From the sequence record NC_027364.1: a stretch of 64,000 bases of DNA; one strand, 5' to 3'. Positions 23,175 to 63,536 of this stretch are shown piece after piece. The position numbers and the translations under genes were made by a program. How positions within the stretch are numbered: the stretch's first letter is position 1; each line of letters begins with the position of its first letter. Under the pieces are notes generated by a model, which worked only from the letters and a program-made list of their open reading frames with translations, made no database searches and had not been told where the DNA came from.

Positions 23175-23479
23175 TTTATTACCTCTATATCTACATCAGT
23201 TCCATAATATGATATTAATCCATCATCAGATTCACACTGAATAGACAACTCAGATTCATAGTATGTTACTTTATTCACTGTTAGTACTTGTTCTTCAATT
23301 ACTCCAGAAAAATAATTCATCTCACGTACACGAACTTTAGTTCCTTTAGGTAGTTCATCTGAGATTTTTCGAACAAGATCATAAGCAGCCTGTTCAAGTG
23401 TGTACAGTAATTGTAATCTATCTTGAATATTCATATTATTTCCACCAACTGGTATCACGTCCATTAGACAAAGATTCAT
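23171..23479 (-). CDS. small helix-plus-beta-barrel family protein
   Basis: LPKGTKVRV segment. Confidence 0.7.
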   Translation of the reverse strand: MNLCLMDVIPVGGNNMNIQDRLQLLYTLEQAAYDLVRKISDELPKGTKVRVREMNYFSGVIEEQVLTVNKVTYYESELSIQCESDDGLISYYGTDVDIEVIK

Positions 23480-24125
23480 TGTACTGATGCCTAAAATTAG
23501 TTTTTGGATTATTGTTCATAGTACTAATAAAATCAAATTTAACATTCTCTTGAATATATTTTTTAACACTATCTTTAAATTTAATAGTACTGAAGTCTAA
23601 ATCTAGATGTTCATACAATACCGGATGACAAAACTCATGTGTACGCAACGCTGGCATGGTATCCTTAATGTATTGCACTGTGTTAATCATTGCATTGTAT
23701 TCAGGCATAGCACGCATCATCATTAGCTGAAAGTGTTCTTCCTCTGACATTGACTCATCTAAATCAATAACGACTTCATCATTTTTAGAGTCATAAACTT
23801 TAATGGTACTCTTGGTTGGATCAAGCATAGCCCACTCTGGATACAGGCATGTTTTCCAAAAAGGATTATTGCACTGAAACATACTAATGAGATTTTGATT
23901 TTTATCAAAAATAGCAAATCCAAGATCCGAACTTGGTTGTACTTCACATACACAAATATCGTAAGACGAGTCTTCAGTACTGAGTGAACCAACTACATTT
24001 GATATATGTGAATATGGAGTTTCTCTTGACTCCAACTGAAATGTACTTTCAATTCGATTGATTTGTGGATGTAATGTAATTACACCCCTTAGTACATATA
24101 AAATTCTATCTAAATCTTTAATCAA
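23436..24125 (-). CDS. FQ-box family protein
   Basis: MSEEEHFQLMM. Confidence 0.75.
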   Translation of the reverse strand: MIKDLDRILYVLRGVITLHPQINRIESTFQLESRETPYSHISNVVGSLSTEDSSYDICVCEVQPSSDLGFAIFDKNQNLISMFQCNNPFWKTCLYPEWAMLDPTKSTIKVYDSKNDEVVIDLDESMSEEEHFQLMMMRAMPEYNAMINTVQYIKDTMPALRTHEFCHPVLYEHLDLDFSTIKFKDSVKKYIQENVKFDFISTMNNNPKTNFRHQYNESLSNGRDTSWWK

Positions 24126-24700
24126 AATTCTATCCCCGTATCGGTTAATTTCGTTCCGTCCATGTACTTAACAGTTATTTCAATGCGTCTATCAGTACTC
24201 AATTTTTGAAGATCATTGAAGTACAATTTAAATTCTTCAAAGAACTCAAGTGGTGGAATATCGTATAAAGTACTAATCTGGAAGTGCTCAGGTAATCCAA
24301 ATTCCAATATATCAATCTTAGGCATAAGTCCATCGGCTGCTGCACCTTCTGGTGTACTGCTGTCTGCTACATAAAACATAGAATTACCATGACGCTGGAT
24401 AACGAATACGCAATCATCTTCACTTATATAAATCATATTTCCAAGGTATGGATCGTTATCACACCAATTGTCATGGACGAATTGATCAACTTGAAGTAAA
24501 TCGTGTATAATTCCTCGACCACTATCATCGATTCTAATATGTAAACCAGAATCACTTTTGCTCAACCAGCGGTATCTTGAATCACATCCTGATTCCATAA
24601 ATGGATATTTTGAAAAATTCATATCAGTACCATTATAAAACCAATCGTACCACTCATTACGCATACTAATCAGCTTAGTACTTAATTCTAATACATTCAT
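24122..24700 (-). CDS. FQ-box family protein
   Basis: GLPEHFQISTLYD. Confidence 0.75.
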   Translation of the reverse strand: MNVLELSTKLISMRNEWYDWFYNGTDMNFSKYPFMESGCDSRYRWLSKSDSGLHIRIDDSGRGIIHDLLQVDQFVHDNWCDNDPYLGNMIYISEDDCVFVIQRHGNSMFYVADSSTPEGAAADGLMPKIDILEFGLPEHFQISTLYDIPPLEFFEEFKLYFNDLQKLSTDRRIEITVKYMDGTKLTDTGIEF

Positions 24701-24707
24701 TTTAGTT

Positions 24708-25010
24708 TTATCCTCTTAATTTAATAGTACTGGCTGGATATTCTACCAAAGTATTATCTGGTAATCCTATACAGTAATAAGGGAAATACCCCATCTTTAT
24801 ATTAATACCAATTAAAATTCCTGTTTTATATGAAGTATTAATTCCATAGTAATCGTCTATATCAACAGTAAGTCCATATAATGATATGTTACAATCCTTG
24901 ATGTATCGGTCAAACATTTTATACATTGATGGATATAAAGTTCCATTGGATTGTCTCACCAAATCAGCCAACATTTTGATAGTACTGTTAATTAAATCTA
25001 TACTGAACAT
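24708..25010 (-). CDS. small helix-plus-beta-barrel family protein
   Basis: LYGLTVDI...GILIG. Confidence 0.65.
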   Translation of the reverse strand: MFSIDLINSTIKMLADLVRQSNGTLYPSMYKMFDRYIKDCNISLYGLTVDIDDYYGINTSYKTGILIGINIKMGYFPYYCIGLPDNTLVEYPASTIKLRG

Positions 25011-25054
25011 CTTTGTACCTGCGAAAAAAGACCAGCAAACGCTGGTCTAAGAAT

Positions 25055-25336
25055 TTAAATTATTTCATAAAGACAATATACACCATCAACGCCAGCATCA
25101 GGAAAATCAACATAGAAATTCACACTAACAGTGTCGTAATCTATATCAGTGATTCGTCCGGTTTTACCTACACTTTTTACAAATATATCAGACCCAAGAT
25201 ACACAAACTCGAACTCGTCAGCATACTCTTTTATGATATCTGCGAACCAACAACCACACCTAGGTTCTGTGTTAATAATTTCAAGATATAATGTAATATA
25301 TTGTTCGTATGTCCATGTGTGTAGATAAAAATCCAT
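25055..25336 (-). CDS. small helix-plus-beta-barrel family protein
   Basis: YLGSDIFV...GRITDI. Confidence 0.65.
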   Translation of the reverse strand: MDFYLHTWTYEQYITLYLEIINTEPRCGCWFADIIKEYADEFEFVYLGSDIFVKSVGKTGRITDIDYDTVSVNFYVDFPDAGVDGVYCLYEII

Positions 25337-25346
25337 AGAAGTTTCC

Positions 25347-35126: not shown

Positions 35127-35155
35127 AAAAAATTAGTCGAGAATAAATCTCGACT
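35127..35155 (-). terminator. intrinsic terminator
   Basis: AGTCGAGA-TTTAT-TCTCGACT-AA-T6. Confidence 0.75.
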
Positions 35156-35782: not shown

Positions 35783-36280
35783 TTAAGTCACTGCATTATA
35801 CTTCTCTATAGCATTAGTAATATTTAATATAGCTTCAGGAACCATTTCTTTATTGTATTCACGTTTTAAATTTTCCATTTTCTTAATAATTTCCAAGAAA
35901 AATGGCAAAATACATGAAGTATCTGTAAAATTACATGAGTACAAAGTACTCATTTGAAATAATTCACCTGAATCAATATTAAGAGTATTGTATTCCTTAA
36001 CAATGTTTTCGTTTGAATTGAAAATGTGAAATACTGTTCCCATGTGATGAAGATATACACCATTCTCATTTTGAATATTGCATGGTGTGATTACAATAGC
36101 AGTGTTGTCAATATTATTTACTATTGATAAACGCAGACTATGTAAACCAAAAATAACAGTGCAATCACTTGAACTGCTTTGAATTTGGTCAGCAGTTTGT
36201 GTAACACTTGTAATATTTTCTCCATCAAGACAACTCTTGATTTTATCAAATGAATTTTTCATTGATTTAGTTAGATACAT
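35783..36280 (-). CDS. FQ-box family protein
   Basis: DSGELFQMSTLY. Confidence 0.75.
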   Translation of the reverse strand: MYLTKSMKNSFDKIKSCLDGENITSVTQTADQIQSSSSDCTVIFGLHSLRLSIVNNIDNTAIVITPCNIQNENGVYLHHMGTVFHIFNSNENIVKEYNTLNIDSGELFQMSTLYSCNFTDTSCILPFFLEIIKKMENLKREYNKEMVPEAILNITNAIEKYNAVT

Positions 36281-36684: not shown

Positions 36685-37105
36685 AAAATAATACCTTGAT
36701 CATTTGTAATGTTTCTGACATTACATCAGCAGAAAATTGAACATCAGTGTATTTTACCATAGTACTTTGAGTAAAGAAAGTAGCTTCAATATCTTCAAGG
36801 TCAAATGGCTCATCAAATAAATTAGTACTGAACATATCAGTTTTTTTCTTATAAGTCAACATAAACTTAGCACTGTATCTCAGTACTATTTCATCTTTAC
36901 TTACTAAAATTCGTGCAATGTTCTGTCTTCCAAGCGTCGTAATGTTAACATTAAATGTATTTTTACGTGTCTCGATAATATCAACAAAATATCCATCACC
37001 CTGATAAACATTGTGGTGAACTTCTAAACCTTGTTGTACTGTATTAAACAATGCATCTTGAATAAAATAATTTGCAGTGTCGATGTTTCCTAAAATATCT
37101 AACAT
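36632..37105 (-). CDS. FQ-box family protein (variant)
   Basis: DIEATFFTQSTMV. Confidence 0.7.
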   Translation of the reverse strand: MLDILGNIDTANYFIQDALFNTVQQGLEVHHNVYQGDGYFVDIIETRKNTFNVNITTLGRQNIARILVSKDEIVLRYSAKFMLTYKKKTDMFSTNLFDEPFDLEDIEATFFTQSTMVKYTDVQFSADVMSETLQMIKVLFYAFEQFREERNKVNNHR

Positions 37106-49542: not shown

Positions 49543-49738
49543 ATATTCTCTTCTGGATTAGTTCCTGTAAGTGCTGAATATAACCCTTCATTGCAACATC
49601 CTGTTTGTTAGAGCCAACGAAGAACAAGAGCTTAAAGTCATGGTAATCCATTTTTGGTTTAGTAGTGAACCATATGTCCCACACTGCACTCACAGTTCTC
49701 ATGTATTCAATTCGATTAAATGTTTTTGAATACTTCAT
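49520..49738 (-). CDS. LGTxxQE small-protein family
   Basis: LLFFVGSNKQDV. Confidence 0.7.
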   Translation of the reverse strand: MKYSKTFNRIEYMRTVSAVWDIWFTTKPKMDYHDFKLLFFVGSNKQDVAMKGYIQHLQELIQKRIYDNNRPK

Positions 49739-50252
49739 CGATGTTCATCGCCAATAAGTTAATATACAAATTACTGTTAAATGCAATCTGCAATTCCATA
49801 TAGAACTGAATGATAGCATAGTCAGGGTCAGTACACGATAGTTGAAAACACTGTTCGTCAAATGCATTGTAATTGTACTTAGGGATGTGAATTTCACGCT
49901 TCAAATCAGGTTGACCCCACTTCATCGCATACACACCAATGTTATTGTTCTTTTTCCTTTTCTTAAATGTTAATTGTTGAATATTTCCAGCGTTGTCTAG
50001 GAAAATAGTATTATTCGACACAGGTGCACCAATAGAAAACAATGATGTATCAATTACGTGTGTCTCACGCACCTCACACTTCTGGAATGCCCCAGTACCC
50101 TGTAATACATAATGAAAATTGTACTTCTCATTAACAACAGTACTAGGATCGATTAAACCAGTACTGCATTTTTTGAGTACTGGTACAATGGTGCGAATCT
50201 TTTTTGATAAATCTTGTAATGCATCAAAGTCATTGATGTTAACTTTCATCAC
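49716..50252 (-). CDS. FQ-box family protein
   Basis: AFDEQCFQLSCT. Confidence 0.75.
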   Translation of the reverse strand: MMKVNINDFDALQDLSKKIRTIVPVLKKCSTGLIDPSTVVNEKYNFHYVLQGTGAFQKCEVRETHVIDTSLFSIGAPVSNNTIFLDNAGNIQQLTFKKRKKNNNIGVYAMKWGQPDLKREIHIPKYNYNAFDEQCFQLSCTDPDYAIIQFYMELQIAFNSNLYINLLAMNIDEVFKNI

Positions 50253-50698
50253 TCGAATGTAGCCTCTTCAGTAGTAACAAAATTGGTTAGTGTATCCAGT
50301 TCAGCAGTGTCAAGATAAAATACATCTAGTACAGATTTCTGATATATTACACTGAATGTGCATAGATTGTCAAGTGTTCCTTGTTCATAAACAGTACTAC
50401 CCTGGAAGTACCCTTCTTCAGTACTCAGGGATAAAATATCTGAAATTTTAAAAGATTCTTCAGTTGTATGTCTTTCTATATTAACTATATTGCCGTTTCG
50501 GTTCAATGAAATATAATCGTATGCTAACTCAATTAGACTATAATTATCCGCATTAGTGTCAAATAAAGCGACAATTTTTCGTCTCAATCTCTCATCGTGA
50601 TCATGGTTTTCATCAGCTAAGTATTCAGGATTTTCTTTGAAGAACTTAACAACTTTTAGAATATCATTTGCTTTCTTGATTGCACTTTCGTAACTCAT
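50249..50698 (-). CDS. FQ-box family protein, long class
   Basis: STEEGYFQGSTVY. Confidence 0.75.
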   Translation of the reverse strand: MSYESAIKKANDILKVVKFFKENPEYLADENHDHDERLRRKIVALFDTNADNYSLIELAYDYISLNRNGNIVNIERHTTEESFKISDILSLSTEEGYFQGSTVYEQGTLDNLCTFSVIYQKSVLDVFYLDTAELDTLTNFVTTEEATFE

Positions 50699-51003
50699 AA
50701 TAATTCAACCACTCCATCTCTAAAGTACATATAACTACCACCATTGGATACTGTGAATTCTATTGTCCCCAATAATATATTATATTTTTTTATTTCACAT
50801 GTAGTACTTGTAGTGTAAGGCTCACCATCTCCTAAGTACATTGACATATGACATAGAACTTTTCTACCAGCATATTTCTCTTCAAACGATTGTTCAAAAC
50901 TATGCATAATTTGATTTAAAGCTGAAATGTAATTAATAAAGTCAGGTATTTCTGTCAATGAATTATAAACCGTACAAAGTGAATCAAATTCATTTTTAGT
51001 CAT
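50695..51003 (-). CDS. small helix-plus-beta-barrel family protein
   Basis: EKYAGRKVLC segment. Confidence 0.7.
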   Translation of the reverse strand: MTKNEFDSLCTVYNSLTEIPDFINYISALNQIMHSFEQSFEEKYAGRKVLCHMSMYLGDGEPYTTSTTCEIKKYNILLGTIEFTVSNGGSYMYFRDGVVELL

Positions 51004-51317
51004 TATATTTCTATCTCAATGTAATCCTGTGTGATTAAGTAATCCCAATGATACTTCACCTGCTTTTGTAATTCAATTAACGTAAAGAAGTTGATCGATT
51101 TATCCCACACGAGCGATTCCTGGAAAATAAATGATTCATGTTCATCGTAATAATCACACTCTAAAAAATCAGGTATATATTCACTATCGTGAATGTATTC
51201 AACAAACGAACTAGCTTGGCATTTCTTTACTACTAGTAATAATGAATTATCATGATCAAACAGATACAATAAACTAATTTCACCAGGGACGTACTGAACA
51301 CTGAATAAGTTTTTCAT
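51003..51317 (-). CDS. FQ-box family protein, short class
   Basis: EHESFIFQESLVWD. Confidence 0.75.
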   Translation of the reverse strand: MKNLFSVQYVPGEISLLYLFDHDNSLLLVVKKCQASSFVEYIHDSEYIPDFLECDYYDEHESFIFQESLVWDKSINFFTLIELQKQVKYHWDYLITQDYIEIEI

Positions 51318-51766
51318 TCTATACCTTCTGGATCTTTACGAAGTTCTTCGAAATCCAAATAAAATCGAGGACAGTTAACACTCTTTAAGTACCACATAAT
51401 AACTAATGCTTCAAGTACTTCATCATCGTAAACAGTACTGTTTTGGAAGTAATATTCTTCACTATCCCACGGACCATCCAGTACTTCATAATTCAAAATT
51501 AATGGTTTTTTGCGATTAATAAAACGAATGCTACCATTTTCAACATAACTAATAAATTCTGCATCTCTATTGTATTCAGAAAACGATATAGGACTATTGG
51601 AATTCAACCCAAGAATAACCCTTACACCAACGGAGTTATTATACATTTCATCTTTGTAGTAGTTGCCGTTCTCGGCTTTGTACACTTCTTTGAACTTTCC
51701 TGCCTTTATATCGTCAAAGTATCCATGTAGTTCTTTTGCTTTTTCAAGAGCACTTTGTAATGACAT
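51314..51766 (-). CDS. FQ-box family, tandem copy 1 of 5
   Basis: VLDGPWDSEEYYFQNSTVY. Confidence 0.8.
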   Translation of the reverse strand: MSLQSALEKAKELHGYFDDIKAGKFKEVYKAENGNYYKDEMYNNSVGVRVILGLNSNSPISFSEYNRDAEFISYVENGSIRFINRKKPLILNYEVLDGPWDSEEYYFQNSTVYDDEVLEALVIMWYLKSVNCPRFYLDFEELRKDPEGIE

Positions 51767-52232
51767 TACCTTCTCCTACAGTATTCTCTACATATTCATA
51801 ATCAAAATAGAAACTACTGGAGTCAATACTTTTGAAATACCACATAATCACAATAACATCCAGTTCTTCTTCATTGTACAACGTACTATTCTGGAAGTAA
51901 TACTCTTCACTATCCCACGGACCTTCTAGTACTGAATAAGGAATGATAGTGTCATCAGCATCACTATCTGTGTTGTAGATGGTAATATCTTCATTACGGC
52001 AATAACTAATGTACTGATTGTACATATGATATTCACAGTTATCACTGTCACCAGTATCAGTGTGCAGTACTAATGTTTCTGCACATATCTCGGACTCGTC
52101 ATAATCGTCACGGTCTTTTACAAAAAATTCAGTATCAGATGTTTTATATACACCTGGAACTGAACCTTCTTGTACCATAATCATATACTCATGAATCTTC
52201 TTTGCTTCTTTCAATGCACTTTGTAACGACAT
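51744..52232 (-). CDS. FQ-box family, tandem copy 2 of 5
   Basis: VLEGPWDSEEYYFQNSTLY. Confidence 0.8.
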   Translation of the reverse strand: MSLQSALKEAKKIHEYMIMVQEGSVPGVYKTSDTEFFVKDRDDYDESEICAETLVLHTDTGDSDNCEYHMYNQYISYCRNEDITIYNTDSDADDTIIPYSVLEGPWDSEEYYFQNSTLYNEEELDVIVIMWYFKSIDSSSFYFDYEYVENTVGEGNVITKCS

Positions 52233-52675
52233 TACAAATCCCCTGAACTTAAATATTCACATGCTCCCCAGTCAAGAAAGAATGGTTCAAAATTCAATTC
52301 CTTAAAGTACCACAACACAACCAAGGAATCAAGCATTTCTTGGTTAAAAATGAAACTCTGTTGGAAGTAATACTCTTCAGTACCCCACGGGCCATCAAGT
52401 ACCCCGAAGTCAACAGGTGCATTTGATGTGTCAAACGTAATCTTAGTACCTGGAATATATACAAAAAAACTAGTATATTGACTACATGAAGAGTACTGTA
52501 TAGTATTGTCTTTATCCTGTCCCATAAGTAAAATATCATCAGAATATGTCTTTATACCTGATAGATAATACTCATCACCAAATGCACTTACTTTATCACC
52601 ATAGAACCCACTTTTTATGTTATCGTGGAAGTGATGTATTCTGTGTGCTAGTTCAAGTGCACTTGCTAAACTCAT
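52232..52675 (-). CDS. FQ-box family, tandem copy 3 of 5
   Basis: VLDGPWGTEEYYFQQSFIF. Confidence 0.8.
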   Translation of the reverse strand: MSLASALELAHRIHHFHDNIKSGFYGDKVSAFGDEYYLSGIKTYSDDILLMGQDKDNTIQYSSCSQYTSFFVYIPGTKITFDTSNAPVDFGVLDGPWGTEEYYFQQSFIFNQEMLDSLVVLWYFKELNFEPFFLDWGACEYLSSGDL

Positions 52676-53142
52676 ATATCCTCTTTAATAACTCGTAGTA
52701 GATCCAAGTCCAAATAGAAGCTAGGACAATCTGTATTATTAAAGTACCACAGAATGACAAGCTTGTCAAGTACATCTTCTGCGTAGATCGTATTCTGCTG
52801 GAAGTAGTACTCTTCACTTCCCCAGTCATTATCCAGTACTGAATACGGAAGATGTTTCTCTGCTGCACCAGATATAATGTCAGAATCTTGTATTAAAATA
52901 TCAGCATCACGACAGAAGTACATGTAATTATCTTCCAAATTAACATCACACCCATTGAGTGTTGTTTCAGAAGAATCTAAGTTTTCTTCATACATGTGAA
53001 TGTACTCACTACTGTCATCGTATCTCATTCGACAATAAGATTTACCTTCCTTGAATAGATATCCATTGAGACAATTTGCTACAATTTCTTTGCTGCATAA
53101 ATCAATTAACTTCGCAATCTCTAATGCTCTTTCTAAACTCAT
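52672..53142 (-). CDS. FQ-box family, tandem copy 4 of 5
   Basis: VLDNDWGSEEYYFQQNTIY. Confidence 0.8.
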   Translation of the reverse strand: MSLERALEIAKLIDLCSKEIVANCLNGYLFKEGKSYCRMRYDDSSEYIHMYEENLDSSETTLNGCDVNLEDNYMYFCRDADILIQDSDIISGAAEKHLPYSVLDNDWGSEEYYFQQNTIYAEDVLDKLVILWYFNNTDCPSFYLDLDLLRVIKEDI

Positions 53143-53143: not shown

Positions 53144-53635
53144 TTAACCCCTGTTAATACCGTTATCTACAGTTTTCTTTACGTATTTGTAATCGAAATA
53201 GAAGTTCCCAGAACCAATACTTTTAAAGTACCACATAATTATAATAACATCAAGCACTTCATTATCGTATACAGTACTTTGTTGGAAGTAATACTCTTCA
53301 CTATCCCACGGACCTTCCAGTACTTCACTCGGAATTATAATGTCATCGGAATCGCTATCAGTACTGTAGATGGTATCTGTATCATTAATATAGACCATGT
53401 ACTCATTATGCATATTAATGAAGCATTCATAATCATTAGGGTCGGTATCCAGTACACACGTTTCTGTATCCAGTACGCACGTTTCTGTATCTGAGTCGTC
53501 ATTATTAAGGAGGTTATCCGGTACATAATATTGAGTACTTGTGTCTTTGAAAACACCGTAAACTGAACCTTCTTTTGCCATATTCATGTACTCATGAATC
53601 TTCTTTGCTTTTTCCAATGAACTCTGTAATGTCAT
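53144..53635 (-). CDS. FQ-box family, tandem copy 5 of 5
   Basis: VLEGPWDSEEYYFQQSTVY. Confidence 0.8.
   Translation of the reverse strand: MTLQSSLEKAKKIHEYMNMAKEGSVYGVFKDTSTQYYVPDNLLNNDDSDTETCVLDTETCVLDTDPNDYECFINMHNEYMVYINDTDTIYSTDSDSDDIIIPSEVLEGPWDSEEYYFQQSTVYDNEVLDVIIIMWYFKSIGSGNFYFDYKYVKKTVDNGINRG
53445..53491. repeat. 21-bp in-frame tandem duplication (about 2.2 copies)
   Basis: GTATCCAGTACACACGTTTCT / GTATCCAGTACGCACGTTTCT / GTATC, encoding ETCVLDT twice. Confidence 0.9.
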
Positions 53636-53644: not shown

Positions 53645-53998
53645 TCATATATTGAAATAATAATTATTCGTTCTTGATGGGGATGGATTAAATACGTTTT
53701 CTTTTTCAAATCTCTTCATTTCATTTTGCAAAGAAACCATTTCTTCAAATGTACAGGAGTACTTATTCTTATCAAACACTAATGCAGCCTGAAATAGTTC
53801 ACCATCGTCCAGTACTGTATAATCTATAAGACTCTCAGATTCATAGTCATCATGTGATACATGAATAAATTTAAAACAAGAATCTTTGTAATGCATATAT
53901 AAACTCAACTCATGTTCCGAGTCTCCCTTAATAAGATTACAGCACAAGTCCCATCCTTTAGGTAACTTATAATAGTACATAGAATAATCATATGTCAT
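53645..53998 (-). CDS. FQ-box family, short class, triplet copy 1
   Basis: DYTVLDDGELFQAALVFDK. Confidence 0.8.
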   Translation of the reverse strand: MTYDYSMYYYKLPKGWDLCCNLIKGDSEHELSLYMHYKDSCFKFIHVSHDDYESESLIDYTVLDDGELFQAALVFDKNKYSCTFEEMVSLQNEMKRFEKENVFNPSPSRTNNYYFNI

Positions 53999-54354
53999 TC
54001 TTGAATTCCTAAATTGAATTTGTATTCTTGATTAATACTTGCATTGGGTTTATTCAAAGCAGCATACTCTTTCATTTCATTTTGTATTGCAATAACTTCT
54101 TCAAATGTACACAAGTACTTCTTATCAAATACTAATGATTCTTGGAATAGTTCTGCGGTATCCATTAATGTATAGTCAGGCATATCTTGGTGTGGATACT
54201 GTAATGAACTGTAATCAATGAATGTAAATTTACCCTGAGTGTAATGAATATACTCATTTGCACTGTGCATTAAATCACCTTTGTTTAAATTACAAAAGTA
54301 CTGATAACTGTGCTTAAAAGAATGTACTGATATTAAAAAATCAAATTCCATCAC
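53995..54354 (-). CDS. FQ-box family, short class, triplet copy 2
   Basis: DYTLMDTAELFQESLVFDK. Confidence 0.8.
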   Translation of the reverse strand: MMEFDFLISVHSFKHSYQYFCNLNKGDLMHSANEYIHYTQGKFTFIDYSSLQYPHQDMPDYTLMDTAELFQESLVFDKKYLCTFEEVIAIQNEMKEYAALNKPNASINQEYKFNLGIQE

Positions 54355-54728
54355 TCTTCCCCTAGATTGAAATGATTACAAAAATTATCTTCACCAGTAC
54401 TGCACCAGATATCTATACATTCCCTGTGAATACATTTAATTCTACGCTGTAATTCAATCATCTCTTCTAATGTACAGATGTACTTCTTATCAAATACTAA
54501 TGCCTCCTGAAACAGTGCAGCATCATCAAGTACTGTATAGTCCAACATCTCGGTTGCTTTACCCCTAAACCCAGTACTAAAATCCATCAAATAAAAGTCA
54601 GCATTCCAGTACTTTAAAATCTTGTCCCTAGCGTAGTTTAAATCACCCTTGTATAAGTTAGAGTGCGTAACTAACTCACCAGTGTACATCCATGTCCTTG
54701 CACAAAATTCATTATATTTTATTTCCAT
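54351..54728 (-). CDS. FQ-box family, short class, triplet copy 3
   Basis: DYTVLDDAALFQEALVFDK; start re-set to MEIKY. Confidence 0.8.
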   Translation of the reverse strand: MEIKYNEFCARTWMYTGELVTHSNLYKGDLNYARDKILKYWNADFYLMDFSTGFRGKATEMLDYTVLDDAALFQEALVFDKKYICTLEEMIELQRRIKCIHRECIDIWCSTGEDNFCNHFNLGEE

Positions 54729-54769
54729 CTTAATCTCTACTATAATTAATAAGGTAAACTCCAATATAA

Positions 54770-54920
54770 GGAGCACGTTGCGGGGCGGGGTATTTTTTTG
54801 TTTCAGGAAACATGCCCTGTACTCTGAAAAACACAATATAAAACTTTATATTAAACATATACCTTAACATGTTTTTCAGCGGAAATTTTTTTGACCCCCC
54901 CCTGCGGCCTGTCAAAATGA
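54770..54920. other. non-coding element with G/C runs and nested inverted repeats
   Basis: GCGGGGCGGGG; CTGAAAAACA/TGTTTTTCAG (54824-33, 54870-79); TTTTGAC-C-run-GTCAAAA (54889-917). Confidence 0.55.
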
Positions 54921-55509: not shown

Positions 55510-56061
55510 TCATACATTAACAACTTTATCGATGTAATCTTCTAACATATCAATATATCTGGTATTGGTTCTAACTAAAAGGTATGCAAATCCAGAAAAC
55601 TCCTGTGTATAATGCTTTACAGCGTACATACAACGAAGCTTATCATTGTCATACATTGTACTGTACTGAAACAAACTCTCGTCTGATAGCTCTAATAACG
55701 CTTGGGCTTCACTTCTCGTGAACTTCATAGGGTCATGTACTGCATCACAAAAACAAACCTGTGTCTCGCTATTGAAACCCTGTGATAGATATATACCTTC
55801 ACACTCTGAACGCACCGATACTGCATTATAACTATGTGTTGCCCCCATCATATCTGAACTCAAAACTAAAATCAACCCATTTTTATTTTTAATCAACAAA
55901 TCTGACTTAAGGGATTTGATCTCCGTATGGGAAATATCACCAAATCTTCCTGGGACTTCAAACTTATCAACGTTGTATACAATCTTTTGTACTTGCTCTT
56001 TTAAACGCTTAATTGCACTTCTGTCTTTTTCTAATGTATCTAATAAACTCATTGAACTCAT
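55510..56061 (-). CDS. FQ-box family protein
   Basis: LSDESLFQYSTMYD; start re-set to the AAGGA-preceded MSSM. Confidence 0.75.
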   Translation of the reverse strand: MSSMSLLDTLEKDRSAIKRLKEQVQKIVYNVDKFEVPGRFGDISHTEIKSLKSDLLIKNKNGLILVLSSDMMGATHSYNAVSVRSECEGIYLSQGFNSETQVCFCDAVHDPMKFTRSEAQALLELSDESLFQYSTMYDNDKLRCMYAVKHYTQEFSGFAYLLVRTNTRYIDMLEDYIDKVVNV

Positions 56062-56071
56062 TGTACTTTCC

Positions 56072-56416
56072 TTACATATTTGTACCGAACAAAACGGAAC
56101 TTTGAATGCCATTAATCGACACTTCATGTACATATATATTTTGTCTGAACAAAGGAACTAATTGAACTAAACTCGTTTGCATAATAATATGCATATGTAC
56201 ATTGTCATATGCCGTTTCGTATTGGAATCGTGCAGCTTCATCTTCTATGAAATTCGGAACTTGGACTGGATTCTCAAAATTTGTCCTTGTACTGAACTGT
56301 ACATCATTGTCCTGTACCTTAATACCATATGAATTATCATTGTTATCAACTACATCAAATTCAATTAAACTACCATCTTTACTGACGTTTACTATATAAA
56401 CCGAAAATCGACTCAT
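56072..56416 (-). CDS. FQ-box family protein, short class
   Basis: EDEAARFQYETAYD. Confidence 0.75.
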   Translation of the reverse strand: MSRFSVYIVNVSKDGSLIEFDVVDNNDNSYGIKVQDNDVQFSTRTNFENPVQVPNFIEDEAARFQYETAYDNVHMHIIMQTSLVQLVPLFRQNIYVHEVSINGIQSSVLFGTNM

Positions 56417-56928
56417 AAACCTATTTCCTCTAAATCTTTGACAAATGTATCATAATCCGATAATGACAAAAATATGTCTGTACTGATGTTCTGACGTAAT
56501 GTATTAAACAAATTATGTACCTGTAATAAATCAGGTGAATAAATCAGGGATTGCTGGAAATACGATTCTTCTGTATCTAATATATCCCTGCACTCAATTT
56601 CACGAACTCGTTGGTATATTGAATTTAATAATACATTTTCATCTTTGAGCATTGGAAGGTATCGGATGTACATGTTCTCCATCAACTCATCTTGGATTGA
56701 ACCCCTGAACTGCAACACGTATTCAAAACACATCACTACATCTTGTAGGTAATTGGCACTGTACTGATTACTATACACGATTTTATGACAACTGAACTCG
56801 GAATCATTTCTGAACCAATTGTTACCCTCTTTCCTGTACTTATGACTAAGCTTCCCATCCTCCAACGCTCGAATGAACTTCATAATGTTAATTGCAAAAT
56901 CATATGAATGATGCTTGTGTTGATGCAT
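56413..56928 (-). CDS. FQ-box family protein, long class
   Basis: DTEESYFQQSLIY. Confidence 0.75.
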   Translation of the reverse strand: MHQHKHHSYDFAINIMKFIRALEDGKLSHKYRKEGNNWFRNDSEFSCHKIVYSNQYSANYLQDVVMCFEYVLQFRGSIQDELMENMYIRYLPMLKDENVLLNSIYQRVREIECRDILDTEESYFQQSLIYSPDLLQVHNLFNTLRQNISTDIFLSLSDYDTFVKDLEEIGL

Positions 56929-57132: not shown

Positions 57133-57756
57133 CTATATATCCAACCCTTTTACAACATCTACGAAATGTTCAAACACTTCTTTTGAAAAATAACCACCTT
57201 CACAAAAAAGCATACTAAACGGTGGCAGCATGTCCGATAACTCTTTAGCTAAATTGATTTCTGCTCTTAACTCTTGAACATCAATGATATCATGTACTAA
57301 AGATAATTGAAACATGAATGCATCTACATCTTCATTCATTTCTGAATTGTAATATAACTCTTCAGGGAATTTGTCGGTTTCGTAATAATAAAAAACTTTA
57401 TTGTTGAACACACCACTAATAGGAACATCATTTTCATCTTTCTTTGAAATGTTTGTTTCCCATGACTCTATATTATTAGGAACAAAAAAATCATAGGCTG
57501 ATTTTGAACCCTGTACTGAATCCAACTTTATTCCATAATATTCCGTATCCATGTATTTCTGCTGTAATGTAATACCACGTGTACTGACATTCACTTGGAA
57601 TATATCATCTTTATCTGGAACGCTAAATGGAATACATAACACTGAATTCTCAGGGTATTTGGCAATGAATGCATCCAGCACTTTATTAAGCACTGGAATG
57701 GCAATTTTACTGTACTGCATCAAATCATACATTTTAATTCTGGTCATATCATTCAC
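57133..57756 (-). CDS. FQ-box family protein
   Basis: DVDAFMFQLSLVHD. Confidence 0.75.
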   Translation of the reverse strand: MNDMTRIKMYDLMQYSKIAIPVLNKVLDAFIAKYPENSVLCIPFSVPDKDDIFQVNVSTRGITLQQKYMDTEYYGIKLDSVQGSKSAYDFFVPNNIESWETNISKKDENDVPISGVFNNKVFYYYETDKFPEELYYNSEMNEDVDAFMFQLSLVHDIIDVQELRAEINLAKELSDMLPPFSMLFCEGGYFSKEVFEHFVDVVKGLDI

Positions 57757-58279
57757 CTGTGTATGTTTTCACCCTTAGCGATTCAAAATCCCATACATCA
57801 CTGATTGTACCATTGTGCCTGTAATCATAATATTCTACTAATACATTATACAATAACTTCAACGATACAAATTCATGATTCCACGGAGCTTTATTCTCAT
57901 GAACACATTTGGTGATATAAGGTATAATATATAAACTAAACAACACTAATGGTGAATGTATACATTGCATTTGAAAATATTCTTCTTCTTGCATACAATG
58001 TTCAGGAATAATTAGATCATAATGTGTCTCAAATAAATGTAAACCTATTGTGGTTTTTTTCGTATCACATGCGTACCATATTGTACTATCCGAAATAAAT
58101 GGAATGATACCATTATTGTTTGCAATGTACATCATATGGTAAGAGCGATTTGTCTTGTTAAATATCTCGATACTTTCGATATTACTACAAATCATGTATT
58201 CAAGGCAATCAATGATCTTATCTTTAAATGTACCAATTTCATTGAATGACATTGCTTTCTGTACTGTTGTACTGCTCAT
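57749..58279 (-). CDS. FQ-box family protein
   Basis: MQEEEYFQMQCIH. Confidence 0.75.
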   Translation of the reverse strand: MSSTTVQKAMSFNEIGTFKDKIIDCLEYMICSNIESIEIFNKTNRSYHMMYIANNNGIIPFISDSTIWYACDTKKTTIGLHLFETHYDLIIPEHCMQEEEYFQMQCIHSPLVLFSLYIIPYITKCVHENKAPWNHEFVSLKLLYNVLVEYYDYRHNGTISDVWDFESLRVKTYTGE

Positions 58280-58788
58280 ATGTTCTCCTTAAAAAAATCC
58301 AAATACTCTTCATTGAAAGCATATGTATCATCTTTTATGTTATGCACCACATAATCATAAAGAGCTATGAATGCAGGGATTATGATCTTACATGATGTAT
58401 TATTATATTTGTGCTGCTCCAAATCAACGGTATTCAATTTAGCAATAAGCATAGCAACAAAGATATCTTCATGGCGGTGTACTGTACTGTACTGAAAATA
58501 TTCATCCTCTCCAATATCAGGATGATATAACGGTATATCCAAATTATTACGAATTGACATTTTATATTTTTGTAATGCAGCTAAATGCATGAACCACAAT
58601 CTATCTTCATGGAAAGATGGAAAAATAATTTTGTCTGTGCTAATAAAAATTTCTTCATTTCGATTATTTGTCACAAGAGGTGCATACATTTTAATTTTTG
58701 CAGATCTAATAATTAAATTAAAAATATAATGAATCTTATGAACTGCACTTGATGCATCTTCGTATGTACTTGGGATTATGAAACTCAC
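58276..58788 (-). CDS. FQ-box family protein
   Basis: IGEDEYFQYSTVH; GTG start after AAAGGAG. Confidence 0.75.
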   Translation of the reverse strand: MSFIIPSTYEDASSAVHKIHYIFNLIIRSAKIKMYAPLVTNNRNEEIFISTDKIIFPSFHEDRLWFMHLAALQKYKMSIRNNLDIPLYHPDIGEDEYFQYSTVHRHEDIFVAMLIAKLNTVDLEQHKYNNTSCKIIIPAFIALYDYVVHNIKDDTYAFNEEYLDFFKENI

Positions 58789-58816
58789 TATATGTTCTCC
58801 TTTAAAATGATTACAC

Positions 58817-58845
58817 ATGATAACAGCTTTGGTCTTCTATGTCAA
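58817..58845 (-). promoter_or_regulatory. sigma70-like promoter
   Basis: TTGACA-17 bp-TG-T-TATCAT. Confidence 0.75.
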
Positions 58846-58855: not shown

Positions 58856-58883
58856 AAAAAAGCCCATATCTTACGATACAGGC
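58856..58883 (-). terminator. intrinsic terminator
   Basis: GCCTGTATC-GTAA-GATATGGGC-T6. Confidence 0.8.
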
Positions 58884-59377
58884 GTTCTGGGCATGTTTAT
58901 TTGAATTTCATTGTACAAATCATCAATATATAGACATGAAAACGATACACTTTCTTTAACTATATTGTTGTGATAAAGCATTTTAAATGCAATATAGAAA
59001 AATAAATCAATATCATCATGTACTAAATTCTGCTGGAACCACCACTCTTCTGTTAAATCTTGTGCATTAAAATCATCAGGAACTACAATTGACGACATAT
59101 CAGAATCTTCTTTGTACTCAAACCACATGTCGTCATTCGGATAACGTTCATGCTTCTCTGGGTAACAATTGGTGGGATTAAATGCTAAAATATAAAATGC
59201 CGTCGAAGAATGTTCTTTATTAAAAAATGAATTATTCCACACCTGATACCTTTCACCAACATCAAGCTCTTTTGATACTGATGTTATTGCACATAATGTA
59301 CTGTATATTGTTTCTATTTTGTGAACAAATTTAAATGCTGCATCTAAACTGAACTCTAAATCAGACATGCGGTGCAT
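58871..59377 (-). CDS. FQ-box family protein, long class
   Basis: LTEEWWFQQNLVHD. Confidence 0.75.
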   Translation of the reverse strand: MHRMSDLEFSLDAAFKFVHKIETIYSTLCAITSVSKELDVGERYQVWNNSFFNKEHSSTAFYILAFNPTNCYPEKHERYPNDDMWFEYKEDSDMSSIVVPDDFNAQDLTEEWWFQQNLVHDDIDLFFYIAFKMLYHNNIVKESVSFSCLYIDDLYNEIQINMPRTPVS

Positions 59378-59697
59378 AAAATTACCTCAACTAAAACAAG
59401 AACGGTATTGAATTCGATGCAACCTTTGATTCCTTGATTGTACATGTACTTTGCTACTACATATTTCTGTACTAAATTATAATTTTTAAATTCCTCAAAA
59501 TTGTAATTTAGAACAAAATCTGTACTCAAAAATAACTTATGCATCTCTAATGCACTTTGATAATACGCGTACAACTCACGGATATCAATACTGGTTAAAT
59601 TATATTGTTCATATCTATGATACGGGATGGCTTCAATTTCAATACTATAAAACCATTCTCTTAACTTATTAATATCAAATGTATTATTCAGCTTCAT
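59356..59697 (-). CDS. hypothetical protein
   Basis: 113 aa. Confidence 0.65.
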   Translation of the reverse strand: MKLNNTFDINKLREWFYSIEIEAIPYHRYEQYNLTSIDIRELYAYYQSALEMHKLFLSTDFVLNYNFEEFKNYNLVQKYVVAKYMYNQGIKGCIEFNTVLVLVEVILCTACLI

Positions 59698-60250
59698 AAC
59701 TCAATACCTCCATTAAACACTCATACACACCATCAATCGCATAAGCACAAAAATTGAAATTAATTTTGTGATTCTTGTGTAATGGACTATTGTGTACTGT
59801 ACTCATTATGACATTATAAAATAACAAACGCACTGGTACAAGCATTGAACCTTGGAAAAATTCTTCCTCTGATTTATATGTATTGTACTCTATTGCTTTG
59901 TTCGTTTCTGTATCATATTTTACCATTACTAACGGGGCATTTTTATTATACCATGCGTACTCTAAATCATTCTTTCCAATAACAGCACCAGGTGCAAAAT
60001 CCAAAAGACCAATAACACTACGGGCATTTGGTGTATCAGGTGTATTGAATCGTTTATCAAAATGACTCGTGCACGTAATATATGTATTGTACTTCGATGG
60101 AATAATACCAATACATTTGTGGAAATGACGCTTGTGATATTTCTGGGCATTATATAAGGCTGCAACAATACAAGCTAACTTTTGTCCCATAAGGATGGCA
60201 TTAGCGTAGGTGTACTGAATATCATTGCTGGTACGGTACTTCGAGGTCAT
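59684..60250 (-). CDS. FQ-box family protein, long class
   Basis: KSEEEFFQGSML. Confidence 0.75.
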   Translation of the reverse strand: MTSKYRTSNDIQYTYANAILMGQKLACIVAALYNAQKYHKRHFHKCIGIIPSKYNTYITCTSHFDKRFNTPDTPNARSVIGLLDFAPGAVIGKNDLEYAWYNKNAPLVMVKYDTETNKAIEYNTYKSEEEFFQGSMLVPVRLLFYNVIMSTVHNSPLHKNHKINFNFCAYAIDGVYECLMEVLSYEAE

Positions 60251-60533
60251 AATATTTCCTTTGCCATATCATGGGCTTAAAATCAATAACAGCTTTCTGT
60301 ATCTTTTTTAATAATAAGACATCATAACCACCCGTGTCAATCACTAATTGCTGTTGGAACAATTCTTCATCGGATAATGTATTGAAATCTACAAAATAAT
60401 CTGTAACTATCGAATCATTTAAATGTGCCATGTACCAACCTGAACTTCTTGAATAAATCAAATTCCACCCATCGTCATCATCTTCTAATTCAACATAAAT
60501 CATATCTGGGGTATACATCATTTTATACTTCAT
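60222..60533 (-). CDS. FQ-box family protein, short class
   Basis: LSDEELFQQQLVI. Confidence 0.75.
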   Translation of the reverse strand: MKYKMMYTPDMIYVELEDDDDGWNLIYSRSSGWYMAHLNDSIVTDYFVDFNTLSDEELFQQQLVIDTGGYDVLLLKKIQKAVIDFKPMIWQRKYYDLEVPYQQ

Positions 60534-61077
60534 AACTATATCCTTGCATTAATAAATCATAAACTACATGGACTAAATTTAATTGAATATAAAATTTTAA
60601 ACCTTTAATTAATGAATTCAAATGCATTGTACTGAATAACATTAGATACATCATCTCATGCGGTTTTGTGATTAATGATTTTTGAAATACTTCAGCTTCA
60701 TCATAAGGGTCTATGAACTGAAATTTGTCTTCATCATAATTTGTATTGGAATGCTGATATATAAAATAATCATCATTGGTATTGTACCACAAATATCCTT
60801 CGAATCCTGTACTAACATCTTTGGTCAATGGGGATGCTGATACTGGATTTGAACTGATTAATGCACCTACATCAACAATCCCCGTTGTATCATATTCGAT
60901 TTCAACATCAATGTCAATATCAATGTATTTCCTTGCGATATCTGCGTTTATGGACAAATATAAACTACCACCTGTCCTCTGACTCAGGATTCCATCTATC
61001 TGCGATATAGGATGGTTGTTATTGAGGATAAGCATTATTGTACTTATCTTGTGTGCTAATAACTCTATCTCATTCAT
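60523..61077 (-). CDS. FQ-box family protein
   Basis: YDEAEVFQKSLI. Confidence 0.75.
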   Translation of the reverse strand: MNEIELLAHKISTIMLILNNNHPISQIDGILSQRTGGSLYLSINADIARKYIDIDIDVEIEYDTTGIVDVGALISSNPVSASPLTKDVSTGFEGYLWYNTNDDYFIYQHSNTNYDEDKFQFIDPYDEAEVFQKSLITKPHEMMYLMLFSTMHLNSLIKGLKFYIQLNLVHVVYDLLMQGYSYEV

Positions 61078-61812: not shown

Positions 61813-62071
61813 ATTTGTTTATCTCATTATGTACCTTAAGCATAAAAATTTGCATATGAATTTTTTGTTCAAGGTGCTTGATAAATTTCTGTACTGTATC
61901 TTCTTGATCTTTTGTACCAAGATAAAATAACATATTAAATTCAGATAATCTCAGAGAGAAATCTTCCTCTCCCCCTCGTAAACAAAAATCCCTGTACTTT
62001 GAAGCGTACAATAAAGAATCTACCTTTTTATATATTTGGGTCTGCATTGTATCTCCATTTTCAAGGACCAT
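61784..62071 (-). CDS. LGTxxQE small-protein family
   Basis: MLFYLGTKDQED. Confidence 0.7.
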   Translation of the reverse strand: MVLENGDTMQTQIYKKVDSLLYASKYRDFCLRGGEEDFSLRLSEFNMLFYLGTKDQEDTVQKFIKHLEQKIHMQIFMLKVHNEINKYEPNNSTGS

Positions 62072-62232
62072 ATGAGCTTATCAACGCATTGATCCTGTGC
62101 TATTGTCCCTAGATAAAATAATACATCAAAATCTGATATTTTGATATTAAAAGGATCGGTGTGTACATTTTTAATAAACTCCCTGTACTTCATTTCATAT
62201 GCATTAGGTATATTCTTATATGTCAATTTCAA
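62020..62232 (-). CDS. LGTxxQE small-protein family
   Basis: VLFYLGTIAQDQ. Confidence 0.7.
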   Translation of the reverse strand: MKLTYKNIPNAYEMKYREFIKNVHTDPFNIKISDFDVLFYLGTIAQDQCVDKLIWSLKMEIQCRPKYIKR

Positions 62233-62533
62233 TGATCCTCCCTGACATACCTTGTATTAGCTTATCATACATATCGAGCATCACTTTTTGAATACTAATT
62301 AGTACTGGCATCGTGCAAATATCAATGTCGTATACTAAGCTGTACTGGAATAATTCATCTTCCTGCATTTGTACTAAATTAGGTAAAAGATAATTGTCTG
62401 CCTCTTCATCCTGGTACTTGAAATGCATAACACCATCCTTTTTGTACAAAAGAATGTCAATATCACCCAACTCTTCGGCATAACCAAATATACATATATT
62501 AGATGTTTTTGCTATATTAAATTTCATCTCCAC
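62216..62533 (-). CDS. FQ-box family protein, short class
   Basis: MQEDELFQYSLVYD. Confidence 0.75.
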   Translation of the reverse strand: MEMKFNIAKTSNICIFGYAEELGDIDILLYKKDGVMHFKYQDEEADNYLLPNLVQMQEDELFQYSLVYDIDICTMPVLISIQKVMLDMYDKLIQGMSGRIIEIDI

Positions 62534-62769
62534 CTCTCTCCGTCAGCACAAGAGTACTGGTACGTTGTCGTTAGGGTAGGGACCATGTTCGTAATGGGCA
62601 TGTTGTTAACAATAACCGTAACAGGCATAAGAATCGTCTCTACTCTACTCTGTCCTGTCCTTGTGCAATTCATCTTCTGCATTTCATCTGAATCCATGAA
62701 ATACAATACAAATGGTGCAATCCCAAGAACAATACACAAGACGATAAGGAAATTTAAAAAATTTAACAT
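62524..62769 (-). CDS. membrane-anchored small protein
   Basis: N-terminal TM helix, two Cys in the soluble part. Confidence 0.7.
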   Translation of the reverse strand: MLNFLNFLIVLCIVLGIAPFVLYFMDSDEMQKMNCTRTGQSRVETILMPVTVIVNNMPITNMVPTLTTTYQYSCADGERWR

Positions 62770-62830
62770 AATTTTCTACCCTAATGATTAACGTACAGGT
62801 ACTATATCAGTAATGAAAAGTACTGTCAAG

Positions 62831-63226
62831 CTAGTATTGCACTGTTCTAATGAAAGTACCTTTACTCATGGATTTAAGCTTATGAACCTCTTCCTGTATA
62901 CCCTTGATTAACCCTAAAGGTATAGGTACATCATGTACTAAGCTGTACTGAAAGTATTCTTCTTCAGATAAAGTACTAACATCTGGAACGCCAATTTTAG
63001 TTAGATAATCTTGATGTGTTGACCAATAAATTATATCTTCAGTACTATTGTACTCCCCATATACTGAACAATATTGATGAATATCTTTCCTGTACCCTTG
63101 AGCAATAAAGAACTTATCTACTGCATTACCAGCATTAATAGAATTCACTTCGATTGTCACAGTACTTGAGCTTGTATAACTCTTAATATTATCAGTACTC
63201 AACTGTGTGTTCTTCATAATCACCAT
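62831..63226 (-). CDS. FQ-box family protein, short class
   Basis: LSEEEYFQYSLVHD. Confidence 0.75.
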   Translation of the reverse strand: MVIMKNTQLSTDNIKSYTSSSTVTIEVNSINAGNAVDKFFIAQGYRKDIHQYCSVYGEYNSTEDIIYWSTHQDYLTKIGVPDVSTLSEEEYFQYSLVHDVPIPLGLIKGIQEEVHKLKSMSKGTFIRTVQY

Positions 63227-63536
63227 TAGGCTCCTGTTTAGATTCTTTCATTAGTACTATCATCTTATGTACTAATGGCATAGGAAACTCTAAATCCCAT
63301 ACTAATGATTCCTGAAAGTATTCCTCTGGTGATAAAGTACTTAAATCTTTAATATCAACGTGCTTGTATATTTTATTTTCGTAATTAACAAATGATATAT
63401 ATAAATCACTAACATAAGAATCATAGGTAATTGTGAATGGCTTACCCTTGTAATCCATTACATCTCTACATAGACTACTTTTGATATATGTATGTTCAAA
63501 TGATTTATATACCTTGAGTTGTATATTAGTTTTCAT
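63192..63536 (-). CDS. FQ-box family protein, short class
   Basis: LSPEEYFQESLVWD. Confidence 0.75.
   Translation of the reverse strand: MKTNIQLKVYKSFEHTYIKSSLCRDVMDYKGKPFTITYDSYVSDLYISFVNYENKIYKHVDIKDLSTLSPEEYFQESLVWDLEFPMPLVHKMIVLMKESKQEPNGDYEEHTVEY

Follow-up and report, generated by a model that had tools for sequence, protein, structure and literature searches.

The 64,000-nucleotide stretch of DNA analyzed here (the window) raises a simple question: what is the purpose of dozens of small proteins that are encoded side by side on one strand and have little in common besides a short box centered on the dipeptide Phe-Gln (F-Q)? The window matches, at 100% identity, record positions 62001-126000 of Escherichia phage PBECO4 (KC295538/NC_027364), an Asteriusvirus and thus a Rak2-like jumbo myovirus, with a genome of 348 kb and 551 annotated genes. 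Between 23.2 and 64 kb of the window, RefSeq labels all genes “hypothetical protein” except a cytidyltransferase and a DNA methyltransferase. A sequence-only reading of this DNA had proposed a set of modular adaptors, in which dissimilar N-terminal domains carry one constant docking box. We find instead about 45 old paralogs of a small, acidic, soluble α/β protein, arranged in tandem and translationally coupled; we call them the FQ family. On the structural models, these proteins are predicted to share one fold, and not to be a box grafted onto unrelated domains.

A mechanical scan located the F-Q dipeptide, with acidic residues before it and x-Ser after it, in dozens of minus-strand open reading frames (ORFs). 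A profile hidden Markov model (HMM), seeded on the strictest box matches and iterated until converged, recognized 40 firm members in the window, all at E<=4e-10, and none of 680 shuffled control proteins; a full-length profile run on the window's ORFs brought in no additional members. Five interleaved ORFs (starting at 38040, 40391, 40897, 41890 and 57133) scored 13-76% in hhalign comparisons with the family, against at most 0.6% for 22 negative controls, and are on these alignments probable degenerate members. The family that had been estimated at about 50 paralogs is thus real but smaller, with 40 firm and about five probable members, or 7-8% of PBECO4's annotated genes. All 40 are co-oriented on one strand, and 38 of them lie within 27.8 kb. 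The other two had been named as outlying members (23436-24125 and 24122-24700), and the profile agrees (E 1e-14 and 4e-12). Two further ORFs so named, at 31003-31623 and 32223-33080, were ruled out, as neither is matched by the HMM and the 32.2-kb ORF reached 0.38% in hhalign. It was also an overstatement that nearly every ORF of the array belongs to the family (the figure is 38 of the 63 ORFs of at least 60 amino acids (aa) in 35.7-63.6 kb) and that the family takes up about 40% of the window (30.1%, rising to 34.4% when the probable members are counted). The division into two size classes is genuine: 11 proteins measure 103-137 aa and 29 measure 147-229 aa. ORF starts were taken as the first ATG, GTG or TTG, so that for some members the true start may lie farther downstream. 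In composition the proteins are acidic (median isoelectric point 4.8, median net charge -9) and of a soluble type, a transmembrane-like segment occurring in 1 of 40. The non-member ORFs interleaved with them have no Pfam match, and their PHROG matches are all of unknown function.

The shared, FQ-centered block does unite these divergent paralogs. In the alignment of the 40 sequences, no column other than F, Q and the start Met is invariant; columns average 12% identity, and the median pairwise identity among PBECO4 members is 16%. Column conservation was pooled over 171 members from six phage lineages, with positions counted from F as 0. Both F and Q (+1) are present in 99% of these, Ser occupies +3 in 84%, and Ser or Thr occupies -5 in 59%. 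Acidic residues are found at -4 (88%), -3 (81%) and -10 (70%), hydrophobic residues at -1 (87%) and +5 (96%), and an aromatic residue or His at +6 (68%), whereas -2 and +2 are variable. The amphipathic helix expected after the box is evident in hydrophobic positions +11, +14, +17 and +20 (77-96% together, and 89-96% for the last three) and is a helix in both models described below; past about +29, hydrophobic positions alternate in the manner of a β-strand. As a sequence pattern, this sits oddly with a purely structural motif: F and Q are fixed, the other hydrophobic core columns are degenerate (top residue 22-46%, none higher), and the most conserved columns after F and Q are polar (S, E, E, D). 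The four examples of the box quoted in the sequence-only reading were located in the window, in the ORFs starting at 53144, 45601, 43125 and 39826. Its distance from the C-terminus, given there as 40-60 residues, was measured as 40-75, and as 98 in the 229-aa protein.

We obtained AlphaFold models of one long member (53144-53635) and one short member (53995-54354); their scores and secondary-structure elements are listed in Table 1. The elements follow the same order in both, within a single α/β domain, and in both the confidence maximum lies at or beside the FQ helix. The extra N-terminal helix attributed to the long class is present in the long model (residues 3-21) and missing from the short one. 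The shared core would consist of a β-meander, a short helix in which two acidic residues come before the invariant F-Q, then a long amphipathic helix and one last β-strand, to which the long copies would add an N-terminal and a C-terminal helix. A Foldseek search of predicted viral structures (BFVD) returned, at E<=0.001, uncharacterized proteins, those with named sources being from Asteriusvirus phages. Weaker matches, with template-modeling scores (TM) of 0.4-0.7, came from RaK2, GAP32, Serratia phage BF and Yersinia phage fHe-Yen9-04. For the better matches, superposition extends along the whole protein (13-27% identity, TM 0.5-0.7), and these come from Rak2-like phages only.

The N-terminal parts were also examined by themselves, with the box and everything downstream removed, BLAST-detectable relatives left out of training and a threshold of z>3. 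A profile of the other members recognized 16 of 30 long-class N-terminal parts and 1 of 10 from the short class. Pairwise BLASTP of the same parts gave three small groups only, which had suggested unrelated N-terminal domains; that conclusion is softened by the profile and fold evidence. Further, matches in the large database described below align from profile position 4 onward. The picture of a constant box on diverse N-terminal domains therefore does not hold, given the single-domain models, the full-length superpositions and the N-terminal parts that are recognized without the box. Structure prediction, which the sequence-only reading had offered as a check on itself, points to one shared fold and away from modules, and places the FQ helix in the best-predicted part. 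The upstream half appears to have diverged past sequence recognition in about half of the copies.

How this divergence came about can be followed by comparing PBECO4 with its relative fEgEco12. Reciprocal best-hit orthologs exist for 37 of the 40 members, with a median identity of 78% and a median ratio of nonsynonymous to synonymous divergence (dN/dS) of 0.25; the corresponding values for 90 neighboring non-family genes are 86.5% and 0.17 (p=0.004 versus the family). Within members, dN/dS is 0.30 upstream, 0.20 in the box module and 0.28 in the C-terminal tail. Nonsynonymous divergence upstream is about twice that of the box module and is the higher of the two in 31 of 37 genes (p=2.6e-5), which, with the β-meander of the models, bears out the description of the N-terminal parts as variable and β-rich. 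By these ratios, each copy appears to be individually maintained under purifying selection. The best paralog lies no more than two genes away in 10 of 29 members (6.8% would be expected by chance), and 16 of the 40 members are nearer to a protein of Klebsiella phage Muenster than to any paralog in their own genome. The family thus seems to be old, having expanded before the genera split, with some later tandem duplications; the five genes at 51.3-53.6 kb look like an instance of the latter.

No characterized domain was matched in Pfam, NCBIfam, PADLOC or the PDB. In a Pfam scan of ten representative members (E<=1), no F-box, ankyrin, PRANC, BTB or Kelch domain was found and no match reached the curated cut-off; the likeness to F-box/ankyrin and BTB-Kelch architectures drawn earlier has no counterpart there. 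NCBIfam and PADLOC, searched with all 40 members, matched individual members only, at E>=7e-4; none of their families was hit by two or more. The profile found only noise among PDB sequences (E 0.72), and the best Foldseek matches in the PDB had E 3.2 (long model) and 0.09 (short model) with low TM; it is through these PDB searches that the fold was compared with characterized anti-defense inhibitors. Sheet-plus-helices platforms matched by the short model in the PDB (TM ~0.2) were discarded as insignificant. In PHROGs, the members are spread over families 9317, 12674, 13866, 15629, 33775, 34636, 30243, 32531 and 37163 (E 1e-50 to 1e-166), all of which are labeled “unknown function”; the common fold and the invariant F-Q are not recorded there. 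The FQ family is not described in the literature that we searched. The jumbo-phage survey of Iyer et al. (PMC7824862) gave no passage on an FQ-family expansion for the terms searched, and the RaK2 paper states only that nearly 10% of RaK2 proteins are paralogs. We conclude that the FQ family is previously undescribed.

An exhaustive HMMER scan of 1.84 billion representative proteins yielded 137 clusters at E<=0.001, and F-Q stood at the expected distance from the C-terminus in 163 of 164 fetched database proteins. Among the matches sampled, every named source was either a Rak2-like phage (PBECO4 relatives, A4, JNE01, RaK2, K64-1 and KP13-7) or an E. coli assembly with a phage-sized contig of 350-359 kb. 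Profile scans of relatives, from which GAP32, CBB, Eneladusvirus and PA5oct were left out, found FQ arrays of at least 40 copies in phAPEC6, 44 in fEgEco12, at least 29 in Muenster and at least 18 in fENko-Kae01, compared to 40 in PBECO4; a metagenome contig holds 30 copies within 20 kb. The counts for Muenster, fENko-Kae01 and the contig cover the fetched stretches and are lower bounds. Copy number differs between relatives (PBECO4, fEgEco12, Muenster and fENko-Kae01), and the DNA of the array is 71-100% covered in closely related genomes. Arrays occur in Asteriusvirus, Alcyoneusvirus and Munch-like phages, and the fold appears to be confined to Rak2-like jumbo phages. Positions 126-170 kb of the PBECO4 record hold no convincing match (one weak match, E 0.003, with the first profile and none with two others).

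The genomic setting is best defined in the relatives. Phage fEgEco12 has a 20,993-bp direct terminal repeat with mapped ends, and everything from its left end is transcribed inward: first the repeat with its spaced small genes, next a series of ~70-aa genes, and after these the FQ array at ~27-56 kb, with additional FQ members adjoining an RNA ligase. The array of fENko-Kae01 begins ~86 bp past a physically mapped terminal repeat, and that of Muenster, in the same order, lies behind a 20-kb repeat predicted by PhageTerm; both are transcribed inward. For PBECO4 itself, a location near the terminus would follow by synteny only. Adjacent genes of the array overlap in 77% of cases (median -4 bp), versus 39% elsewhere in the window. 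Nine of ten σ70-like matches of at least 11/12 are on the gene strand, and four of these nine, all with an extended -10 element, fall in gaps longer than 40 bp (eight gaps, making up ~2.7% of the array). In PA5oct, a distant Rak2-like relative, host RNA polymerase is needed and the terminal-repeat genes are early (PMC7318152). The 62 proteins of the phAPEC6 virion proteome include none from gp404c-466c, its FQ array, and among the fENko-Kae01 members none carries a flag from liquid chromatography-tandem mass spectrometry, in a proteome of ultrafiltered lysate that includes non-structural proteins. The phAPEC6 proteome rules out the idea, which we had considered, that these are internal head proteins of the T4 type.

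Table 1. Features of the FQ array and its surroundings, in window coordinates. “Member” denotes a firm member of the FQ family and “probable” a probable degenerate one; E values are those of the HMM. pLDDT, predicted local distance difference test; pTM, predicted template-modeling score.
Feature	Positions	Strand	Length (aa)	Evidence and remarks
Member, outlier adjoining RNA ligase	23436..24125	-	229	E 1e-14; syntenic members by RNA ligase in fENko-Kae01, fEgEco12
Member, outlier	24122..24700	-	192	E 4e-12
Terminator-like hairpin	35135..35155	-		downstream of last array gene
Member	35783..36280	-	165	E 2e-13
Member	37099..37617	-	172	E 2e-10
Probable	38040..38624	-	194	hhalign 76% vs family, controls <=0.6%
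Member	39213..39764	-	183	E 8e-12
Terminator-like hairpin, T run	39801..39819	-		in gap
Member	39826..40407	-	193	E 1e-16
Probable	40391..40900	-	169	hhalign 13%; box-like FQ
Probable, without FQ	40897..41325	-	142	hhalign 36%
Member	41325..41903	-	192	E 7e-16
Probable	41890..42474	-	194	hhalign 33%
σ70-like promoter, 11/12, extended -10	43065..43093	-		gap just downstream of terminator-like hairpin
Terminator-like hairpin, T run	43107..43126	-		
Member	43125..43691	-	188	E 3e-15
Member	43636..44199	-	187	E 1e-13; first start codon, true start may be downstream
Member	44722..45216	-	164	E 9e-18
Member, short class	45204..45617	-	137	E 5e-13
Member, short class	45601..45963	-	120	E 1e-15
Member	45956..46438	-	160	E 3e-18; phrog_12674
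Member	46435..46911	-	158	E 1e-18
σ70-like promoter, 12/12, extended -10	46945..46974	-		intergenic gap of array
Member	46971..47555	-	194	E 2e-16
Member, short class	47515..47850	-	111	E 1e-13
Member, short class	47840..48202	-	120	E 2e-17; phrog_13866
Member	48801..49361	-	186	E 5e-13
Member	49716..50252	-	178	E 4e-10
Member	50249..50698	-	149	E 2e-15
Member, short class	51003..51317	-	104	E 1e-10
Member, recent tandem cluster	51314..51766	-	150	E 3e-21; phrog_9317
Member, recent tandem cluster	51744..52232	-	162	E 4e-20
Member, recent tandem cluster	52232..52675	-	147	E 2e-17
Member, recent tandem cluster	52672..53142	-	156	E 2e-19
Member, long-class protein modeled	53144..53635	-	163	E 8e-22; AlphaFold2 pLDDT 82, pTM 0.77; N-terminal helix 3-21, five β-strands, short helix; FQ helix 113-120, long helix 125-139, final strand, last helix
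Member, short class	53645..53998	-	117	E 6e-17
Member, short-class protein modeled	53995..54354	-	119	E 3e-19; AlphaFold2 pLDDT 76, pTM 0.74; no N-terminal helix, five β-strands, short helix; FQ helix 66-75, long helix 84-100, final strand, no last helix
Member	54351..54836	-	161	E 4e-15; length by first start codon
Member	55510..56133	-	207	E 1e-17
Member	56413..56928	-	171	E 5e-15
Probable	57133..57756	-	207	hhalign 46%; full-length HMM E 0.009
Member	57749..58279	-	176	E 3e-20
Member	58276..58818	-	180	E 6e-12
σ70-like promoter, 11/12, extended -10	58817..58845	-		gap just downstream of terminator-like hairpin
Terminator-like hairpin, T run	58862..58883	-		
Member	58871..59377	-	168	E 7e-15
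Member	59684..60250	-	188	E 4e-16
Member, short class	60222..60533	-	103	E 1e-16
Member	60523..61077	-	184	E 9e-15
Member, short class	62216..62533	-	105	E 4e-15
σ70-like promoter, 11/12, extended -10	62801..62829	-		gap
Member, short class	62831..63226	-	131	E 2e-15
Member, short class	63192..63536	-	114	E 4e-15

Our preferred explanation, to which we give about an even chance of being correct as a whole, is that the array encodes an early repertoire of host-takeover or counter-defense binders built on one FQ scaffold. Host RNA polymerase would transcribe the array early, starting at σ70-type promoters that lie just within the leading genome end, and the products would act in the infected cell, each neutralizing or redirecting a different host component in the service of host takeover or counter-defense. 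The FQ helix would hold the shared scaffold together as its keystone. Since F and Q never vary and the conserved residues beside them are polar, the FQ patch probably doubles as a functional surface common to the copies, one that belongs to the fold itself and is not a linear docking motif that could be detached. Genes near the arrays of relatives count on the same side by analogy: the Muenster record has a putative ADP-ribosyltransferase gene within its FQ array (48161-48571), and a protein kinase gene lies in the relatives' terminal repeat. Small YafQ-like and ParE-like toxin-type genes are also found in the terminal-repeat region, and all of these are typical host-takeover or conflict genes.

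Several observations weigh against this explanation. The timing and role that it assigns to the array are read from position and analogy, and the total number of promoter-like sites equals the expectation from shuffled sequence. A dN/dS of 0.25-0.30 signifies no gene-wide positive selection, where a role in an arms race might predict otherwise. Finally, 14 of 30 long-class and 9 of 10 short-class N-terminal parts bear no sequence signal of common origin, so the fold that they would share is drawn from the two models and the BFVD matches only.

As to the role of F-Q, helix capping, the periodicity of packing and the best-ordered location of the box argue for a structural keystone, whereas the fixity of F and Q next to degenerate core neighbors and polar columns argues for a functional surface; we give these two roles about equal weight. 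Were the role purely structural, the proteins would be an ordinary paralog family in which F fills the core between sheet and helix, helices are capped by Q and the flanking Ser/Thr/Asp/Glu residues, and the copies have unrelated functions with no common partner or ligand. We consider this a serious possibility, though a doubtful one. It fits the position of the box helix in the best-predicted part of a single modeled domain, the run of ~80 conserved columns with helix and strand periodicity, the variable opposite face of the helix (-2, +2), and the Ser/Thr at -5, acidic helix start and Asp at +7, which are textbook choices at capping positions. It fits less well with an F that is never replaced by Y, L or W while the other core columns degenerate, with an equally conserved Q, and with the polar residues that five of the six best-conserved columns hold, an unusual feature if the motif served packing only. 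On another reading, the acidic E-E-x-x-F-Q-x-S patch may be a common docking surface by which ~45 early proteins with variable β-faces plug into one host or phage hub. We regard this as unlikely; if true, the array would be a phage-encoded combinatorial library of adaptors or inhibitors, found across Rak2-like phages of Escherichia, Klebsiella and Salmonella.

The modular form of docking put forward by the sequence-only reading, in which unrelated N-terminal target binders share a constant linear box that leads to one hub, such as the phage's ClpP- and HslV-like peptidases, strikes us as improbable. Near-absolute conservation of F-Q in an acidic stretch, the twofold faster evolution of the upstream part, and the presence in the window of ClpP-family (Pfam E 4e-41) and HslV-family (PHROG E 6e-25) genes are all compatible with it. 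However, the models depict one domain and not two modules, distant paralogs match structurally over their full length, half of the long class still shows N-terminal homology, the Pfam scan contains no adaptor-type domain, and the box is helical and packed, unlike a degron or linear motif. The co-occurrence of the peptidases is uninformative, because they are common to the whole phage clade, and nothing links them to the FQ family. It is more improbable still that the conserved helix-turn-helix module is a self-association surface that forms homo- or mixed oligomers via the FQ patch, with the variable sheets facing outward. The constant amphipathic helix after the box could serve such a purpose, and ~45 co-expressed, translationally coupled copies would favor co-assembly, but the acidic net charge disfavors tight self-packing without a counter-charge. 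We attach hardly any credence to the idea that the box is a recognition or cleavage site for a Gln-specific, chymotrypsin-fold (3C-like) protease by which all members are processed alike. The box presumably resembles such sites in form, a likeness that served as a lead and not as a test. No such protease was found in the window, to which the scan was confined and where the peptidases are ClpP-family, weakly ClpP-like and HslV-family; the box is in a confident helix inside a domain and not in a linker, and conservation extends far past a site-sized stretch.

Comparison with known systems places a binder repertoire in context. T4-type internal head proteins are packaged and cleaved, and carry a short conserved targeting element at the N-terminus. 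The FQ proteins resemble them as small phage proteins that have little in common beyond a short conserved element, but differ in their absence from the phAPEC6 virion proteome and in a box that is internal and structured. The multigene families of asfarviruses and the ankyrin/PRANC proteins of poxviruses are terminus-proximal families with presumed roles in host interaction, and the FQ array is like them in its tandem arrangement near a genome end, its deep divergence and the variation of its copy number between relatives. Those families, however, have separable, recognizable domains, some with a proven docking partner, whereas an FQ protein is one compact domain in which no module is recognizable; and the FQ array, unlike them, has a fairly stable copy content, with 37 of 40 orthologs kept between species clusters. 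Phages SPO1, T5 and T7 have early host-takeover regions at the leading genome end. Such regions, that of PA5oct included, hold unrelated genes, unlike the FQ array, which is one expanded family. With the terminal-repeat early genes of PA5oct (PMC7318152), the array nonetheless shares a position beside or in the repeat, co-directional small genes, host-type promoters and products that are undetected in virions. Bacillus phage G likewise has dozens of small-domain paralogs in one jumbo genome, a zinc-ribbon family of ~35 copies whose function is unproven (PMC7824862). The zinc ribbons have a known fold and occur in one phage; the FQ family has no known fold, an invariant F-Q and arrays in at least three genus-level groups.

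Other features of the locus deserve mention. The two outlying FQ members (23436-24700) stand outside the main array, immediately upstream of the RNA ligase gene (22032-23174); this outpost recurs in fENko-Kae01, with three members before the RNA ligase, and in fEgEco12, and is thus conserved across genus-level groups. A second paralog family, of 65-95 aa, adjoins and is partly interleaved with the FQ family, to which it is unrelated (hhalign 0.38%). Six copies are in the window on the minus strand (49351-49542, 49520-49738, 61784-62071, 63526-63801, 63770-63991 and one more), and 25 more lie past its right edge, at record positions 126001-131883. In fEgEco12, 28 of the 29 small ORFs between 21.1 and 28.2 kb belong to it; phAPEC6 has 31 copies, Muenster has 10, and the fENko-Kae01 stretch has none. 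Three of its positions are 100% conserved: a Thr, a Gln three columns on, and a Leu eleven columns after the Gln. Together, the two families fill most of the DNA directly behind the terminal repeat. The two largest stretches of the array without a gene of at least 90 aa, at 54837-55509 and 61078-61425, contain ORFs of 61-69 aa only and have no Rfam or tRNA match; scans of the whole window with Rfam and for tRNAs found no RNA genes.

The window has a GC content of ~32%, and its genes are on the minus strand except one annotated plus-strand gene at 7127-7504, the only one in the annotated stretch of 1-36 kb; its annotation is that of a virion structural protein, and metabolic genes of the minus strand surround it. 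Three peptidase-like genes are close together on the minus strand (5372-6034, 6293-6916 and 10185-10880): an HslV-family gene, a “protease” with a weak ClpP match, and a ClpP-family gene. The HslV-like gene has no Pfam match, and neither it nor the second protease gene matches a PDB sequence. The clear ClpP-family gene is the RefSeq “head maturation protease”, and the prohead protease detected by mass spectrometry in phAPEC6 is another gene (gp227c). Beyond the window, at 157841-170100 of the PBECO4 record, at least ten paralogous plus-strand genes labeled “regulator of chromosome condensation” (RCC1-like) are situated at the point where transcription diverges; their homologs in phAPEC6 are virion proteins, listed as “DNA condensation protein”.

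Among the candidates for phage therapy are the Rak2-like jumbo phages, in which ~83% of genes lack a known function. Once the copies are recognized as a single fold with one invariant site, dozens of hypothetical proteins, unlinked until now and filed in separate PHROGs, become one tractable target. A single solved structure and a single time-course of expression would shed light on dozens of genes per genome. If the members are indeed binders for host takeover or counter-defense, then the array would be a ready catalog of inhibitors of enterobacterial functions.

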